Positions 37,001 to 43,630 of a stretch of 64,000 nt of DNA are shown here, piece after piece (within the stretch, counting starts at the first letter, position 1; each line of letters starts with the position of its first letter). Position numbers and translations under genes: made by a program. This DNA is from Vitrella brassicaformis CCMP3155 (Eukaryota; Protista; Chromerida). The DNA lies in the NCBI GenBank assembly GCA_001179505.1, contig CDMY01000355.1, positions 40,155 through 104,154 on the forward strand, written 5' to 3'. A model generated the notes under the pieces. That model had not been told where the DNA came from. It saw only the letters and a program-made list of their open reading frames with translations, and made no database searches.

Positions 37001-39174
37001 AAGCATCTAAGGCTTTGGTTCGGCCCGATGGCGATGAAGCCCGACGCAATGATGCCCACACACACGCCTGCAGGCATACCACACCACAGCACACACAGCG
37101 CACCACACACACGTCATCGATCGACGTGAGCGTTGGAGGGTGGCTCGGCTCGTGTGGGTCCGTTTCGTCCATTTGTGCGCACCCACCGGCCCATCGGTCC
37201 TTCACGCCGCATTTGTAGATGAGGACAGATGTGCTGTAGGTGAGGTATGCCTGCAGCGACCCCCCCAGGCCGCACAGCAGGTTCGCCCCGCCATGGTTGC
37301 GCAGCTCCCGATCGACGCTGGCCTGCTTGTGCATCGAAGACGCCAAAGCGGGGATGTTCACTGACACACACACACACATAGAGTTCTTCGTGTGCAGGTG
37401 CGTCTGCGCGTGGACGCACACCCATACCCGGCACGTGCAGGACAGAGAAGACGACCAGACTGGTGATGGTGGTGACGTGACGGGATATCATATCCCAGGC
37501 TATCAGGTCGAGCCGCACCAACCGCCACACGTTGAAGTGCCGCAGCACCCGCTCGCACGTCAGCGCCTGCACGTACTCAAAGAAGGAGGGCGGCATGATG
37601 GTGTCCAGGTCGGGCTGCGTGGCCGAGGGGTTCGTCAGGTTGGCAGGGGACCGCGGCTCCCCCGCTGAAGGGATGTTGGGCACATTAGTGTCGAACAGCC
37701 AGCCGGCCTGGCGAGCTTCCTGCAGACAGACAGACAGACAGACATACATACAGACATCCGTTGGGTCGCCGCCAACAGACGTTGTGTCTGTGTTACCTCA
37801 GTGCCGATGCCCGCGAAGTACAGAATGAAGTAGAAGCCCATTGGGATGCACAGGAGGTAGAGCGGCGTGAGGAAGGGCCACTCGATCTTCCGGTTGAGGG
37901 TCAGCAGCAGCACCTCCAGCACAATCACGCACAACCACCGCTCCATCGGCCCCCACGCCAGCTGACCCAGCAGAGAGGTCGACTGCCAACTCCACGCCAC
38001 ACCTGCATTGCAATCATTGCATACACAGACAGACCAGCCATTGACTTGACGGGATCCAGCGACCAGGCTTGCATCGAGCCGCTGACTGACTGACTGACTG
38101 ACTGACCTGAGGCCACGCCGATGCCCGCAGTGGCGATGAAGAGCCCCATGCCGCCCGTGATGCCCAACAGCACGTGCTTGGGGAAATACTGGGTGGTGCT
38201 GCCGAGATGCAGCAGACCCAGGAAGTAAAACGCCACCTGATCATGTGTGAGTGATGAATCGAGCAGCCAAGACACCCACAGATCAGATACGTCTGCAGTG
38301 CCTCTTATGTGTGTGCGCCTTGCTCGCTTCGTTCCTACCGTACCCCGGTAGCCAGTGTGGACATGACGAAGGCCACGAGTATGGTGGAGACCACCTGGTC
38401 ATCCCTCCCGACGGACTCCAGCGATATTGCCAAAGATGTCGACAAGGCGTGCAGAAACGGCGCATTCTCGGCTATCACGCCTGATGGAACCAAGGGAGGG
38501 AGCAAGGATGGATGTTGCAGGCCGACCTTTTCTTCTCTGTCTGTCCGTCTGTCCGTCTGTCCATCTGTCCGTCCGTCCGTCCGTGTGTCTGTCTGTCCGT
38601 GTGTCGTGTGCGCACCGCACCGGCCATTGCGTAAGGGAATTGCGAGAAGATGGCAAACGCAATCTGAGATATCACCTGGTGAACACACCAACACACACAC
38701 ACACACAGGTCACTGACTGACTGCATGTTTCACACGTTCTTTCGTTTCGTCCGTCCGCCGGTCCATTCATGGCGTGCCTGCCTACCGTGCTGAGCATGAC
38801 CATGGTGACGCCAGTGGGTGCCAGCTCGGGGTGGTGGTGGGGGAACAGCAGAAACCCATACGGCACGTTGTCCAGGATGGCCACGATGCCCGCAACCAGT
38901 ATGCCCGGGATCTGACAGACAACACATGCCCAACAAACACATGTGCCCGCGCAGCGCATGCAGCAGAGCCCAACGCACAACTGCATGTATGCCACTAACT
39001 GCATGCGTCCCTCTCACCCACCTGCCCAGCAGCCCGTCGTATTCTCCTGATCCTCCTGCGCCTCTTTCGCGCATTCACGTCAATATCGGGGCACGGTACT
39101 GGCCCGGAGGGCGGGGGGATGTCATCCAGCGCCTCCTCCTCAACCGATTCAAGCAGCAGCTGGGTGCTCGCCAT
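34042..39174 (-). CDS. SulP/SLC26-family transporter with STAS and cyclic-nucleotide-binding domains (yeast Vsb1/Ygr125w-like)
   Basis: ILDNVPYG, VAFYFLGLLHLGSTTQYFPKHVLLGITGGMG, VDRELRNHGGANLLCG..GSLQAYLTY. STAS: IIKLQGALFFGNA..LMLDFTRVVSIDSTG. cNMP: YFVTRRVTAGATIW..., GQMIGEVGLL..RRKTNLVA. Start codon uncertain. Confidence 0.85.
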
Positions 39175-39267
39175 CTTCACTTCATCAAGGCATTCTCTCG
39201 ATTCCCGAAGGCAGGGCTGCTCTGGAATGGTCAGCAGCTGCTGTTGGAACCACCAGTCATTGGAGCT

Positions 39268-39277
39268 AAGCTCGCAG
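39268..39277 (+). promoter_or_regulatory. Candidate upstream element AAGCTCGCAG
   Basis: 65 nt before the TsaE-TsaD ATG; the same motif recurs before several other genes. Confidence 0.55.
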
Positions 39278-39342
39278 ATGCTCCGGCTCGCAATCGCTCT
39301 CTCGGCGTTCGTTTCGTTCGTTCGCTCGGCGGAAAGGAAAAA

Positions 39343-41521
39343 ATGAGCGCAGAGAAGAGGTAAGAAGCCCACCGTGCACTAGGCATGCGACGTGACTCAT
39401 CCACCCAGTGGGCGATCTCTGCCTCTTTCGTTGATTCCTTTCAGCGACGGAACGTCATCACCTGTTCCGTCTGTCAGCGTCTGTCTGCCCACATCGGATG
39501 CCACAGAGGACCTTGGAGCGCGGCTGGCGTCGCTCACCTGCCGCGGCGACGTCATCTTCCTATGCGGCGAGCTGGGTGCCGGCAAGACCTGCTGCGCCAA
39601 GGGCTTCCTGCGCTCCTTCTTTTCAAACCCATCCCTGGAAGTGCCGTCGCCGTCCTACCTGCTCTGCAACACCTATGCTGACGATGCTGACGACCAGCAG
39701 CAGCAGCAGCAGCCGATATCTGCCGACCACCCACCATTGGCGCAGCAGGCAGCATCGCTGCCTCCCCGGTTCAGAGCGGACAGGGCTAGGATCTCTGGGG
39801 TGACGGTGCATCACATCGACTCCTTCCGCCTCCCAGTGGGCAGGATCGCCGCCGTGTTGGATTTCTCGGCCATCTTCGCCAACAACATCAGCCTGATCGA
39901 GTGGCCGGAGCGGCTGGGGCCCCAGCTCGTGACGTCCACTACCCCGCCGCGGCTGGAGGTGCATCTCGAGGGCGTGGGGCCGCAGGCGCAGGGGCGGACA
40001 GCGGTGCTCAAGGGGGTGGGCGAGAGATGGGAGGCGCTGGTTGAGTCGTGGCGGCAAGCAGGTGGGCCACCTGGTGCACCACCCATGTCGAACTTAGCTA
40101 TCGCTCAGCCAGCGGATTCTTCTCTGAACGGACCTTCTGGCAGTGAGAGGCCCCTTGGGGAGAACACGGCAGCGAGTGATGAGGACAAGAGGGAGCGTGA
40201 TGTGATCACTCTGCCTGAGGATCCATCCACGTGGCTGGTGCTGGGCATCGAGTCAAGCTGTGACGACACCGGTGCGGCGGTCATTCGCGGCGACGGTAGG
40301 GTGCTGGGGGAGGCCTTGGCTTCGCAGAGTGGTGTCCACGAGCAGTGGGGCGGCGTCAAGCCCGATGCCGCACAAGCGTGCCACAAGGCGGCTATCGATG
40401 GCACTGTCGATGAGGCATTGCGGAAGGCTGGCGTGGAGCCGTCATCTCTCCATGCTGTGGCCGTTACAGTCGGCCCAGGCCTGTCGCTCTGCCTGCAGGT
40501 GGGGGTGAAGAAGGCGCTTCAGCTTGCATCGACCCATCGGCTGCCCCTCGTCCGTGTGCACCACATGGAGGCCCACGCCATGGTCACACGACTGCCCCAG
40601 CCCACCCAGCAGCCCAACCCCGACACGTCATCTGCACCACCCAGCCCTGGCCCTCCTGTCACGTTCCCCGCCCTGGTGCTGCTGGTGTCTGGCGGGCACA
40701 ATATGGCCGTGTTGGCCAAGGGCATCGGGCAATACAAGATCCTCGGCAGCACGCTGGACGACTCCATCGGTGAGGCCTTCGACAAGACCGCCCGTCTGCT
40801 GGGCATCGACACCATTCCCGGCGGGCCGCTGCTGGAGCGGCTGGCCGATCAGGGCGACCCCAACAAGTATGCCTTCTCCCTGCCCTTCGCCAAGAGCCGC
40901 AACCTCGCCCTCCGCAACGGGTGTGACTACTCCTTCTCTGGCCTCAAGACACAGGTCCGGGAGCTCGTCAACAGCGAGATACAGCAGCAGCAACAGCAGG
41001 AGGAGAGTGAGGGTGATGGGGGCGACAGCGATTCGTCGGCCAAGGTGCGCGCCGACATCGCCGCGTCGTTCCAGTCGGTGATCGTGTCGCACCTGCTGGA
41101 GCGGGCCACGCGAGCCATCGCCTGGGCGCAGGCAGAGGAGCCCTCCATCAAACACCTGGTGGTCGCGGGCGGCGTCGCCGCCAACAAGACGGTTCGGTCG
41201 CGCATGAAGGAGGCGGCAGACAACGCCGGCCTGACGCTCGTGTGCCCCCCGCCCCGTCTGTGCACGGACAACGGGGTCATGGTGGCGTGGACTGGCCTGG
41301 AGCGGCTGAGGCTGGGTCTGTGGGACGTGCCGCCGGTGAAAGGCGCGGATGTGGATCGTTTCGTGGAGGTGTGCCCTCGGTGGCCGTTGGGGCAGAGGGA
41401 CGCACGGAGCACACCCAAGCCTGGCGGGGGAGGGGGAGGGGGAGGGGTGGGCAAGGCGAATGGGCAGACAGGGGGAGAGAAGGCCGCCAAGAAGGCCAAG
41501 AAACAAAGAGACGGTGTCTAG
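39343..41521 (+). CDS. Fused TsaE (YjeE ATPase) - TsaD/Qri7 (t6A threonylcarbamoyltransferase); one 85-nt intron at 39360-39444
   Basis: TsaE motifs GELGAGKT (39566-39589), SPSY, HIDSFRL, IEWPERL. TsaD motifs LGIESSCDDT, AVTVGPGL, HHMEAH (40559-40576), LVSGGH, DDSIGEAFDK, SFSGLKT, AGGVAAN, LCTDNGVM. All lie in one uninterrupted frame from 39445 to 41521. Confidence 0.93.
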
Positions 41522-41859
41522 CTCAGCTGCATGGGGTTTTCTCTGTGTGTTGTGGGCGAATGAGATGAGTGGCGTTGGTTGATGTGACGGATGGATAGAT
41601 CCATGCGTTGCATGCAGGATGGACGGACGAGAGAATCTCAATAAGTATGTGCGAGTGTCAATGACATTGAATGCCGTTTGTCAGCCCACGAGCACGAGCA
41701 CGCGATAAGGGAATCAATGTCGTCGAACGTTGACCAACGAGACACACGCATCCAGGAATTACACTCCAACACCCTCACAGGCAGCAGCAGCACAAGCCAA
41801 GCCAGCCCACCCGATCTCACACACGTGCACAGACACACCCCACTACACAACACAGCGCA

Positions 41860-43630
41860 CTAGTCTGTGTCCCATCGGTGCCCGGCGCTTAACGCCCCCT
41901 TAGGTAGCTGCGGGCCTTTGTGCGCTTGCCCCCTCTGAAGCTCCGCACGATGGCCTGGATCCACTCCCCAGTCGGGCTGAGGCGCTTCAGGTAGATGCCG
42001 GTCCGATGACGCTTCGCCAGCGACAGTGGCACCGGCTCCTCGGGGGCGGCATACGCACTGTTGATGAGGCGCTTCTTGCCTCGGCCGATGACCCACGGCC
42101 ATAGGCTGACGGCTCACAGGGCCTGCAGGGGGTGCGCACAGGGGGGGCAGCCTCGACGGTCTGGGTCGTGTTGCAGATAGCTGCAGACAAGACACACACG
42201 AAGAGACATGATTGTTGACATTGATGGATGGGGGCGAGGTGGGGGAGGTGAGCTGACATGTCAGTGTACTTCTGCTTATACGCCTGCAGCTCCACGCGCA
42301 CACCAGTCTCTCCCGTCCCCTGCATCAGCCACGCGACAGATGAGTGAGCTCATGAAACGGTCGGTGCACTGGGGCGATGTTCTTAACTGAGTGCGTTCAT
42401 ACCATGACAAGGTTCTCGCGGGTGTCTCGCAGGACCTTTCTCCAGGTCCACAGCAGCTCACGGTGTTCCTGCAGACAGCCGGGCATACACACACACATCT
42501 CCACGTGGCGGATGGGATCGGATGGGATGCGGTGTGCATGTTGTTGACGGTGTGGTGCACACACGCCCCCACACACACCTGGATCAGCGTCTCCTCACTG
42601 GGCTTGCGCAGGAGCCTGACTTTGGTGACGGCCGCACCGCGGATCAACCTGTGGAGGGAGCGACGCAGGCCCCCATCAGTCAGCTTGTGTGTGGTCCGTT
42701 GTGCTTGTTGGCTGTGTGTTGGCTTACGGGCGGTTCGCTTCCAGGGCGGACATATCGTAGGGGCTGTCCCCCACAGAGACGACCCTCGTCGGCTCGAGCC
42801 CCATCACCCGCAGTCCCTTGAGCAAGTCCCCGAAACATCCCCTCTGAACGCACGGACCGGTGGAACACATCCATCAAATACACGCAACAACGAGGCTCGG
42901 ATCGCCCACCTTCCAGGTGGACGAGTCCAGCTTCCCACGGCAGGCCTTGTCGGCGTGTTTGCGTGACGATATGAAGGGGATTTGCTGCTGGTGCAGGAAA
43001 TGGCGGACCCCCTCATACCCGGGGTACTGCAGCGACTCGTACAACCTGCAGACACACACACAGACACACAGACACCACCCATGCACACACGCCGATGCAG
43101 TCAGTGTTTGTGTTGTGTGTTGCGTTGGCTAATTGGGTACTGTACACTCGGGAGACCCGTTGGAGATGATGACCACCTGGGCCTTCTTGGCGGCCTCTTG
43201 CAGGAGGGCCAGGGCCTCCGCACCGCCCCTCAGGTTGACCCGCCAGGGCCGCACGGGATCCACATAGGACGAAGGAAACAGCGTATCGTCCTGACACACA
43301 CATAAGCACGCAAGATGACAGAATGCATTCCGCATCAACGCCTTTACATGCATGTGTTGATGCTGCTAGATGCATCGGTTCAATGCACCCCGTGCTTACC
43401 CAGTCGAAGATGACGACGTCGACGCTGGTGCCTTCTTGGCCACCCAACGCCCCACTAGTCAGGCCGCAATTGAGGCCGCTTTCCATGCTCTCTGGCACGC
43501 TCTCTTGGGAGCCGCCTGCCTTGTTCGAGCCGGAGAGAGGGCAATCGAGAGAGGGCAGGGGCCGGGCGGTGGCTGCCGAGTGCCCCTCAGCGCCGCAGAA
43601 AGGGCTCCTGCACGTGGATGCTGACGCCAC
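41860..43630 (-). CDS. HAD-superfamily-like protein (DWDDT motif)
   Basis: Spliced motif I VVIFDW|DDTLFPSS, motif II VVIISNG, motif IV VVSVGDSPYD, then KVRLLRKPS. Start and last exon are uncertain. Confidence 0.72.

Follow-up and report, generated by a model that had tools for sequence, protein, structure and literature searches.

A native, spliced TsaE-TsaD fusion gene of Vitrella brassicaformis, member of a family widespread in algae and protists and candidate for a single-chain t6A-synthesis enzyme

The stretch of DNA analyzed in this work (hereinafter, the window) comprises 64,000 nucleotides (nt) of Vitrella brassicaformis CCMP3155 (contig CDMY01000355.1, positions 40,155 to 104,154 of the forward strand) and harbors, at 39344-41521 of its plus strand, a gene of two exons whose 697-amino acid (aa) product carries a TsaE-type P-loop ATPase followed by a TsaD of the Qri7/GCP1 type. 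We assign a probability of about 80% to the reading that this native and expressed gene encodes a single-chain enzyme for the synthesis of N6-threonylcarbamoyladenosine (t6A) in tRNA, in which TsaE is tethered to TsaD. According to the listing of the open reading frames (ORFs) of the window, both halves lie in one uninterrupted frame (39392-41521) that reaches the stop codon and has no in-frame ATG before TsaE. The true start is the ATG at 39344, embedded in a 17-nt exon (39344-39360) that consists of this ATG and the following 14 nt and encodes MSAEK and two of the three bases of codon 6, as defined by the DNA, the annotated protein and the RNA splice. An 84-nt spliceosomal intron with GT..AG borders (39361-39444) separates it from the second exon (39445-41521), which embeds the remaining coding sequence including the stop codon (41519-41521) and is supported by the ORF, its translation and a continuous RNA contig. 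The two-exon model matches exactly the 697-aa protein annotated for V. brassicaformis CCMP3155.

Four public sequencing runs were aligned over positions 37800-43500 of the window. Two of them, X6 and X1, are RNA-like, the latter covering the ORF and not its flanks; the other two, X2 and X3, exhibit an even depth, contiguous over the locus, and hence represent genomic DNA. In run X6, a single contig (record 23; 2,274 nt, depth 42.5) joins positions 39330-39357 to 39443-41688 (RNA joint 39357->39443, cut +2) and contains the 5' untranslated region (UTR; 39330-39343, up to the limit of the contig), the splice, the entire ORF encoding TsaE plus TsaD and a 3' UTR of 167 nt (41522-41688, where the contig terminates). 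The single mRNA whose confirmation had been proposed in a previous inspection of this DNA made without database searches (the sequence-only reading) does, therefore, span both halves. It might be argued that two adjacent genes, or a bacterial contaminant, have been read as one by the annotation or the assembly, and the long frame devoid of an in-frame ATG before TsaE would fit such a scenario. However, the RNA contig is spliced and runs over both UTRs and the ORF, the intron has canonical GT..AG borders, the GC content of the gene is that of its flanks, the DNA is contiguous over the locus, and the same fusion occurs in independent transcriptomes from many species; on this evidence, we consider an artefact ruled out, its probability being close to nil. 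The gene is native to Vitrella, spliced and expressed as a fusion, its nativeness being indicated by the presence of an intron and of RNA, by a GC content resembling that of the host and by the phylogeny described below.

The idea that one frame carries both a complete TsaE and a complete TsaD was borne out by the Pfam matches and by the motifs. The TsaE domain spans residues 15-211 (39470-40060), where the match to PF02367 reaches 67.5 bits (cut-off 26.6) and is divided into two segments by an insertion; the threonylcarbamoyl transferase domain of the TsaD/Qri7 type spans residues 270-660 (40235-41407) and matches PF00814 with 255 bits (E 1e-75). The borders deduced from the letters alone, i.e., 39470-40060 for TsaE and from about 40232 (residue 269) onwards for TsaD, are in agreement with these assignments. 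The TsaD half also exceeds the cut-off of the NCBIfam TsaD equivalog TIGR03723 (322 bits versus 296.1), and it lies well below that of the Kae1 equivalog TIGR03722 (175 bits versus 375). The same ranking emerges from the sequence matches in the PDB, where the TsaD of E. coli and Salmonella score 210-215 bits, the Kae1 chains 80-120 bits and the TsaE chains 26 bits.

All the motifs quoted in the sequence-only reading (GELGAGKT, SPSY, HHID..RL, IEWPE, HHMEAH, SGGH, DDSIGEAFDK, SFSGLKT, GGVAAN and TDNG) were found in the translation. In the TsaE half, the signatures of the family, that is, Walker A GxxGxGKT, SP(S/T)(Y/F), hhhhD-x-Y-R-L and (I/V)EW, are present and align one-to-one with E. coli TsaE (MG1655): the Walker A GELGAGKT (residues 47-54; 39566-39589) corresponds to GDLGAGKT and the Walker-B-like strand HHIDSFR (residues 129-135; 39812-39832) to YHFDLYR. 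The SPSY and Walker-B strands are separated by a low-complexity insertion (approximately residues 86-122; 39683-39793), recognized as a gap against E. coli TsaE and predicted with low confidence (predicted local distance difference test, pLDDT, 55-66), which in Vitrella contains a first polyglutamine run (residues 90-95; 39695-39712). The TsaD half possesses the His-His-Asp metal site and the nucleotide-binding motifs (HHMEAH, at residues 378-383 and 40559-40576, SGGH, GGVAAN and TDNG) and embeds a second polyglutamine run (residues 519-524; 40982-40999), where all the sequencing runs leave repeat-related loose ends. Both runs are real, being present in the translation, and they are weak evidence for the long residence in this genome that had been read from them. 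The two domains are separated by a linker of about 50 aa (approximately residues 216-265; 40073-40222), unconserved and mostly disordered (pLDDT <50 at residues 234-255), and the protein terminates with a disordered tail (41408-41518; pLDDT 36-41) comprising a run of eight glycines and a lysine-rich end (KKAKKQR).

A structural model of the Vitrella protein was obtained with AlphaFold2, using the 80 fusions described below as the input alignment. The model exhibits a mean pLDDT of 86.8 and a predicted template modelling score (pTM) of 0.87, disorder being confined to the five N-terminal residues, to the linker (234-255) and to the C-terminal tail (668-697); a second AlphaFold model, built on a compact homologue (570 aa, 49% identical), reached a pTM of 0.89. 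When submitted to Foldseek, the C-terminal domain retrieved the TsaD of Salmonella and E. coli (3zet_B, 4ydu) with template modelling (TM) scores of 0.90-0.91 and a root-mean-square deviation of 2.8 Å, i.e., it is predicted to adopt the two-lobed ASKHA fold of TsaD, and the N-terminal domain retrieved the TsaE of Bacillus subtilis (5np9, TM 0.85) and Thermotoga maritima (6s84_B and 6n9a_E, TM 0.77-0.78), in agreement with the TsaE fold. Since the pTM is high in spite of the disordered linker, a defined mutual arrangement of the two domains is predicted and, read from the pTM only, this suggests that TsaE might pack on the TsaD of the same chain.

The full-length protein was then used as a query against 5.8 billion proteins, and the PF02367 plus PF00814 architecture was scored. 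It was found in myzozoan alveolates (Symbiodinium species, Effrenium, Amoebophrya and Perkinsus olseni), in the haptophyte Prymnesium parvum, in Euglena gracilis and a second euglenid, in picoeukaryotes and in many MMETSP and EukProt transcripts labelled complete. Among chlorophyceans (Tetradesmus, Volvox, Gonium, Chlamydomonas, Haematococcus, Astrephomene and Pleodorina), it takes the form of a triple HIT (PF01230)-TsaE-TsaD fusion of 750-1090 aa, with HIT preceding TsaE. Since the substrates of HIT enzymes are nucleoside-monophosphate conjugates and the t6A intermediate, threonylcarbamoyl-AMP (TC-AMP), is an acyl-adenylate, it is possible that the HIT domain plays a role in editing or salvage. 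A large additional group (570-660 aa, 41-44% identity) is also eukaryotic, and one 656-aa member is encoded on a 152-kb contig together with genes for an mRNA-capping enzyme, a protein kinase, RRM and RING proteins and a separase.

Hence, the fusion is not peculiar to Vitrella and has a broad distribution among algae and protists. The sequence-only reading had presented it as a possible further arrangement of the t6A system; what holds is that a genuine, expressed single chain of TsaE plus TsaD exists in an intron-bearing eukaryote, and this arrangement is not special to this genome. The reading had also allowed for the fusion proving widespread and already described in algae. The former is the case; as for the latter, no publication describing a eukaryotic TsaE or a TsaE-TsaD fusion was found in a search that left subscription journals mostly outside, so that an earlier description is possible, and neither is mentioned in two reviews on t6A diversity, in an extensive review on tRNA, or in the papers devoted to TsaN and to the phylogeny of Qri7. 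Databases automatically annotate these proteins as "GCP1", "Glycoprotease 1" or "N6-L-threonylcarbamoyladenine synthase". The component families are all well known, and their fusion is annotated in databases yet apparently undescribed in papers.

The origin of the two halves was analyzed separately. As for TsaD, bacteria and archaea (one genome per species) were scanned with an alignment of TsaD halves as the query, and 597 relatives were confirmed. The best 80 of these 597 share 40-46% identity and nearly all belong to Alphaproteobacteria (Rickettsiales, Rhodospirillales, Acetobacteraceae and Parvibaculaceae), in a sampling skewed by the choice of search patterns (HHME[AC]H, CDFSFAGLK-like) and devoid of cyanobacteria. 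Among the structures of reviewed UniProt entries, the best match is the mitochondrial GCP1 of Arabidopsis (O22145, 45%), followed by alphaproteobacterial TsaD (up to 41%) and animal OSGEPL1 (36-37%). A careful maximum likelihood tree (84 rows, LG+C20), which included neither cyanobacteria nor animal, fungal and plant sequences, placed all eukaryotes in one clade (support 100/100) with the sampled Alphaproteobacteria outside it. Within this clade, all the 34 fusions and five TsaD-only rows form a sub-clade (100/100), and the TsaD-only GCP1 of trebouxiophytes (Coccomyxa, Chlorella and Myrmecia) form a separate one.

Four of the five TsaD-only rows are fragments, since their contigs (1.27-1.46 kb) barely exceed the ORFs (391-401 aa). 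The fifth, a 490-aa protein labelled "Magallana gigas" (UniRef K1P1Q4), is strongly nested among the haptophyte-type fusions, and its TsaD is 55% identical to the Vitrella half, compared with 36-37% for vertebrate OSGEPL1. This position rules it out as a representative of animal OSGEPL1; the oyster assembly is probably contaminated with algal sequence here, or else contains a piece of a fusion gene. The fused TsaD of chlorophyceans clusters with the other fusions, away from the GCP1 of trebouxiophytes, so that the fusion clade is a lineage of its own rather than a local Qri7 that acquired a domain. As judged from these trees, the TsaD half belongs to the Qri7/GCP1 lineage beside Alphaproteobacteria, hence its mitochondrial ancestry, and the bacterial or endosymbiotic origin suspected from the letters alone holds for this half.

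A search carried out with the TsaE half alone, under a length filter leaving out the fusions, revealed bacterial TsaE at no more than 88 bits and, above them, free-standing proteins of 220-275 aa at 100-117 bits. The latter occur in Prymnesium parvum (where the fusion is also present), P. polylepis, the red alga Chondrus crispus and the diatom Attheya; one of the free TsaEs lies on a eukaryotic contig, with actin and triose-phosphate-transporter genes alongside and no TsaD downstream. An exhaustive search of 1.84 billion representatives with a TsaE profile retrieved 23,674 TsaE-like proteins (64 at E <=1e-30), with the fused type ranking first, followed by a free type in which the domain begins between residues 40 and 125. 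These free eukaryotic TsaEs are separate proteins of 180-340 aa, falling into about 100 clusters besides the Prymnesium, Chondrus and Attheya members. In a careful tree of 119 rows, with bacteria including E. coli and four named alphaproteobacterial TsaEs and without cyanobacteria, the fusions are monophyletic (100/99), and the eukaryotic TsaEs are split from the sampled bacterial ones at 100/95, the fused half grouping with the free-standing eukaryotic TsaEs as its nearest relatives. When a plasmid collection was searched for tsaE with tblastn, all the matches came from Proteobacteria, Bacillota (Firmicutes) and Actinobacteria (best, Sinorhizobium, E 2e-15). As far as sequence comparison can tell, many algae and protists retain TsaE, either free or fused. 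In the light of this broad family, the notion that mitochondria use Qri7 without TsaE, taken as known in the sequence-only reading, is valid for yeast and animals (PMC2760799) and does not apply to eukaryotes in general.

The TsaE and TsaD trees share the same sub-clades, namely euglenids, chlorophyceans, an Amoebophrya group, a Prymnesium group, and Perkinsus with picoeukaryotes. The monophyly of both halves of the fusions, together with these matching sub-clades, indicates on phylogenetic grounds that the fusion arose once and that the halves have been co-inherited since then. A precursor fusion or an operon neighbour in bacteria was also considered. The tsaE gene was adjacent to tsaD in none of 80 alphaproteobacterial loci (10-kb flanks) and lay within the flanks in only 4 of the 80, always on the opposite strand, and the exhaustive TsaE-profile search revealed no high-scoring protein of the length expected for a bacterial fusion. 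This hypothesis was ruled out on both counts and, given the lack of an adjacent tsaE in those 80 tsaD loci, the fusion looks like a eukaryotic invention.

The conservation of single residues was counted over 80 fusions from very distant eukaryotes. Invariant positions include, in the TsaE half, G47, G52 and K53 of Walker A, S74 of SPSY, H129, D131, R134 and E158 of IEW, and, in the TsaD half, H378, H379, M380, E381 and H383 of HHMEAH, as well as SGGH; T54, W159, GGVAAN and D614-N-G are conserved in at least 90% of them. All fusions possess the low-complexity insertion between the SPSY and Walker-B strands, with a variable length, and their TsaE domain is characterized by a family-specific motif, G-x-G-P-Q-A-x-G-R.

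Some features weigh against the reading of this protein as a single-chain t6A-synthesis enzyme. The TsaE equivalogs are below their cut-offs (TIGR00150, 44.6 bits versus 60.1; NF007931, 52.2 versus 246), which we attribute to the 40-aa insertion and to a general divergence. The TsaE motifs show one deviation, a phenylalanine in place of the conserved tyrosine (DSFRL), and Vitrella is alone in having it where D-P-Y-R-L has Tyr. The sampling of TsaD relatives is biased, as stated above, and the lack of a mitochondrial presequence, discussed below, is hard to reconcile with a plain "mitochondrial Qri7 plus TsaE" interpretation. The first two of these points, together with the 26 bits scored by the TsaE chains of the PDB, might lead one to view TsaE as a degenerate, ATPase-dead appendage kept for folding or dimerization. 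This view is improbable in our opinion, since the Walker A lysine, the Walker-B-like aspartate, the serine of SPSY and the glutamate of IEW are invariant in 80 distant fusions and the fold appears intact (TM 0.85); an ATPase-dead domain would not be expected to keep its catalytic residues over such evolutionary distances.

How might a single-chain t6A-synthesis enzyme work? In bacteria, TsaD-TsaB binds the tRNA and transfers threonylcarbamoyl from TC-AMP, and TsaE competes with the tRNA at the TsaD-TsaB interface, its ATPase activity resetting TsaD for the next turnover (PMC10484737, PMC10275265). By analogy, the TsaD domain of the fusion would transfer threonylcarbamoyl from TC-AMP to A37 of ANN-decoding tRNAs through its His-His-Asp metal site, and the TsaE-type P-loop ATPase, tethered by the flexible linker of about 50 aa, would pack against its own TsaD domain. 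The ATP-driven docking and release of TsaE might then take place in cis, or across a Qri7-like homodimer replacing TsaB. Yeast Qri7 is a homodimer that dispenses with both TsaE and TsaB, and the most economical version would be a dimer of the Qri7 type whose tethered TsaE domains each bind to and leave the tRNA site in an ATP-dependent cycle; the fusion may also have a distinct partner resembling TsaB. The "self-resetting enzyme" suggested in the sequence-only reading is plausible and consistent with the predicted structures. Overall, we infer t6A activity, ATPase activity, the reset mechanism and the independence from TsaB.

A further question concerns the cellular compartment in which the fusion might act. 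In the Vitrella protein, only 14 residues (MSAEKSDGTSSPVP), with a net negative charge, precede the first TsaE strand, and no mitochondrial presequence was recognized; the transcript starts 14 nt 5' of the ATG, and no in-frame ATG occurs between the neighbouring gene and the ATG at 39344. The 80 fusions behave similarly: the residues before the first TsaE strand have a median of 2 and are no more than 20 in 61 of the 80 proteins, the short N-termini are acidic (D+E 12%, K+R 6%), and a C-terminal tail with at least five K/R is present in 65 of the 80. The lack of an N-terminal targeting peptide in Vitrella and in most of its homologues makes a canonical import of the fusion into mitochondrion or plastid unlikely. 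The leaders of the free eukaryotic TsaEs have a different composition (median 43 residues, K+R 14%, D+E 2%, S+T 17.5%), and that of the diatom Attheya is a signal peptide ending in an ASAF motif, which we take to be typical of diatom plastid import. These leaders suggest that the free TsaEs are targeted to an organelle, probably the plastid, which would imply that the plastids of red-lineage algae contain a TsaE of bacterial type, a subject on which no publication was found.

On this basis, one could hypothesize that the fusion itself is a plastid t6A enzyme, derived from a cyanobacterial-type TsaD and TsaE transferred to the nucleus and fused there. The confinement of the fusion to lineages with present or past plastids and the plastid-like leaders, including the ASAF of the diatom, of the nearest relatives of its TsaE half are in agreement with this idea, and the Vitrella plastid encodes tRNAs that need t6A. 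However, the TsaD half falls into the Qri7/GCP1 clade beside Alphaproteobacteria, the 14 acidic or neutral N-terminal residues of the Vitrella protein constitute neither a signal nor a transit peptide (61 of the 80 homologues being likewise short), and the fusion is retained in Amoebophrya and Perkinsus, neither of which, to our knowledge, has plastid translation. In addition, the Euglena homologue EG_transcript_4384 was found neither in the plastid nor in the mitochondrial proteome supplements, an absence that proves little. Altogether, a plastid enzyme of this kind seems very unlikely.

Alternatively, the protein might be a mitochondrial Qri7 orthologue that gained an accessory domain, is imported in a non-canonical way and acts on tRNAs inside mitochondria. 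The Qri7/GCP1 ancestry of the TsaD half and the automatic annotation of the Perkinsus copy as mitochondrial speak in favor of this scenario, which we regard as possible and somewhat doubtful for the following reasons. Besides the missing presequence and the absence of the Euglena homologue from the mitochondrial supplements, the fused TsaD of chlorophyceans stands apart from the TsaD-only GCP1 of trebouxiophytes, as expected for a separate lineage. Moreover, the only products encoded by myzozoan mitochondrial genomes are three proteins and fragments of rRNA, a mitochondrial genome being altogether absent from Amoebophrya (PMC6723311), and the Plasmodium mitochondrion uses cytosolic tRNAs that have been modified beforehand (PMC4615747). 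Since the fusion is nevertheless kept in Amoebophrya and Perkinsus, its substrates in these lineages must be nucleus-encoded tRNAs.

We can speculate, tentatively and at rather low odds, that the fusion is a t6A enzyme which originated in eukaryotes and moved out of the organelle, combining a TsaD of mitochondrial lineage with an endosymbiont-derived TsaE, without a targeting peptide and with a basic tail, and serving nucleus-encoded tRNAs in the cytosol or nucleus or on the surface of the organelle, either alongside KEOPS or partly replacing it. An organelle-departed enzyme would account for the retention of the fusion in lineages without organelle-encoded tRNAs (Amoebophrya, Perkinsus and other myzozoans). 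If this were true, eukaryotes would possess a second, KEOPS-independent t6A route outside organelles.

The comparison with known systems helps to define what is peculiar to the fusion. With the bacterial TsaBDE (E. coli YeaZ-YgjD-YjeE; T. maritima TsaB2D2E2, 6n9a/6s84), it shares families, catalytic motifs and folds; it differs in being one polypeptide, in its eukaryotic host, in its intron, in the 40-aa insertion within TsaE and in the G-x-G-P-Q-A-x-G-R motif. Qri7, OSGEPL1 and Arabidopsis GCP1 share with the TsaD half a eukaryotic clade adjacent to Alphaproteobacteria; however, Qri7 and OSGEPL1 are homodimers without TsaE and with mitochondrial presequences, whereas the fusion lacks a presequence, terminates with a basic tail and carries a conserved TsaE domain, which speaks against a TsaD acting on its own, and its clade (100/100) is distinct from the TsaD-only GCP1 of green algae. 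The free-standing eukaryotic TsaE shares its motifs with the fused one and differs in being a separate, leader-bearing protein. No YjeE homologue exists in yeast and worm (PMC2760799).

A functional analogue is the archaeal Kae1-Bud32 (Methanocaldococcus jannaschii MJ1130, 2vwb/3en9), likewise a t6A transferase of the Kae1/TsaD superfamily fused to a regulatory ATPase, Bud32 being viewed in reviews as the functional counterpart of TsaE (PMC10275265). Nevertheless, Bud32 is a kinase-fold ATPase located at the C-terminus and belonging to the KEOPS lineage, whereas in the fusion a P-loop TsaE occupies the N-terminus, and the Foldseek match concerns the Kae1 part only. The TsaN of Pandoravirus (TsaD-TsaC-SUA5-TcdA, 8ide; PMC10484737) is also a fusion of t6A components, with different partners. 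Bacterial clusters of the ESM Atlas, to be taken as leads only, include a TsaE joined to a RimI-type acetyltransferase (about 300 aa, Actinomycetota), a TsaE joined to an APH phosphotransferase (about 505-519 aa, Pseudomonadota) and a 1,042-aa Acetyltransf+TsaD+TsaE protein. The components of the t6A system are prone to fusion, as TsaN and these bacterial TsaE fusions, the latter as leads, indicate, although none of them has the plain TsaE-linker-TsaD layout of the eukaryotic proteins.

Upstream of the fusion gene, the window harbors a spliced gene on the minus strand (37800-39252), with CT..AC (i.e., GT..AG) introns and a high RNA depth, one exon of which matches the sulfate permease family (PF00916). 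Its transcript stops at 39252, so that the two genes are arranged head to head. Since their 5' ends are only about 80 bp apart, the sulfate-permease-family gene and the TsaE-TsaD gene probably share a bidirectional promoter region. An intron of this neighbour embeds a tetranucleotide-type repeat (GTCT/GTCC-like, 38529-38711), at which every sequencing run skips or breaks and whose ORFs give SVCPSV/RTDGQTD repeats in several frames.

The modification t6A is among the few universal ones of tRNA, and the usual picture assigns its synthesis to TsaBDE in bacteria, to KEOPS in archaea and eukaryotes, and to a minimal Qri7 in mitochondria. TsaE and TsaB are usually called bacteria-specific, which, for TsaE, is contradicted by its presence in algae and protists, either free with a leader or fused to a Qri7-type TsaD. 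The existence of the fusion raises the question of where t6A is formed in cells that rely on import for all of their mitochondrial tRNAs. Moreover, it provides a natural single-chain system for the study of the resetting of TsaD by the ATPase cycle of TsaE, and it allows one to ask whether a TsaD homodimer can replace TsaB yet still need TsaE.

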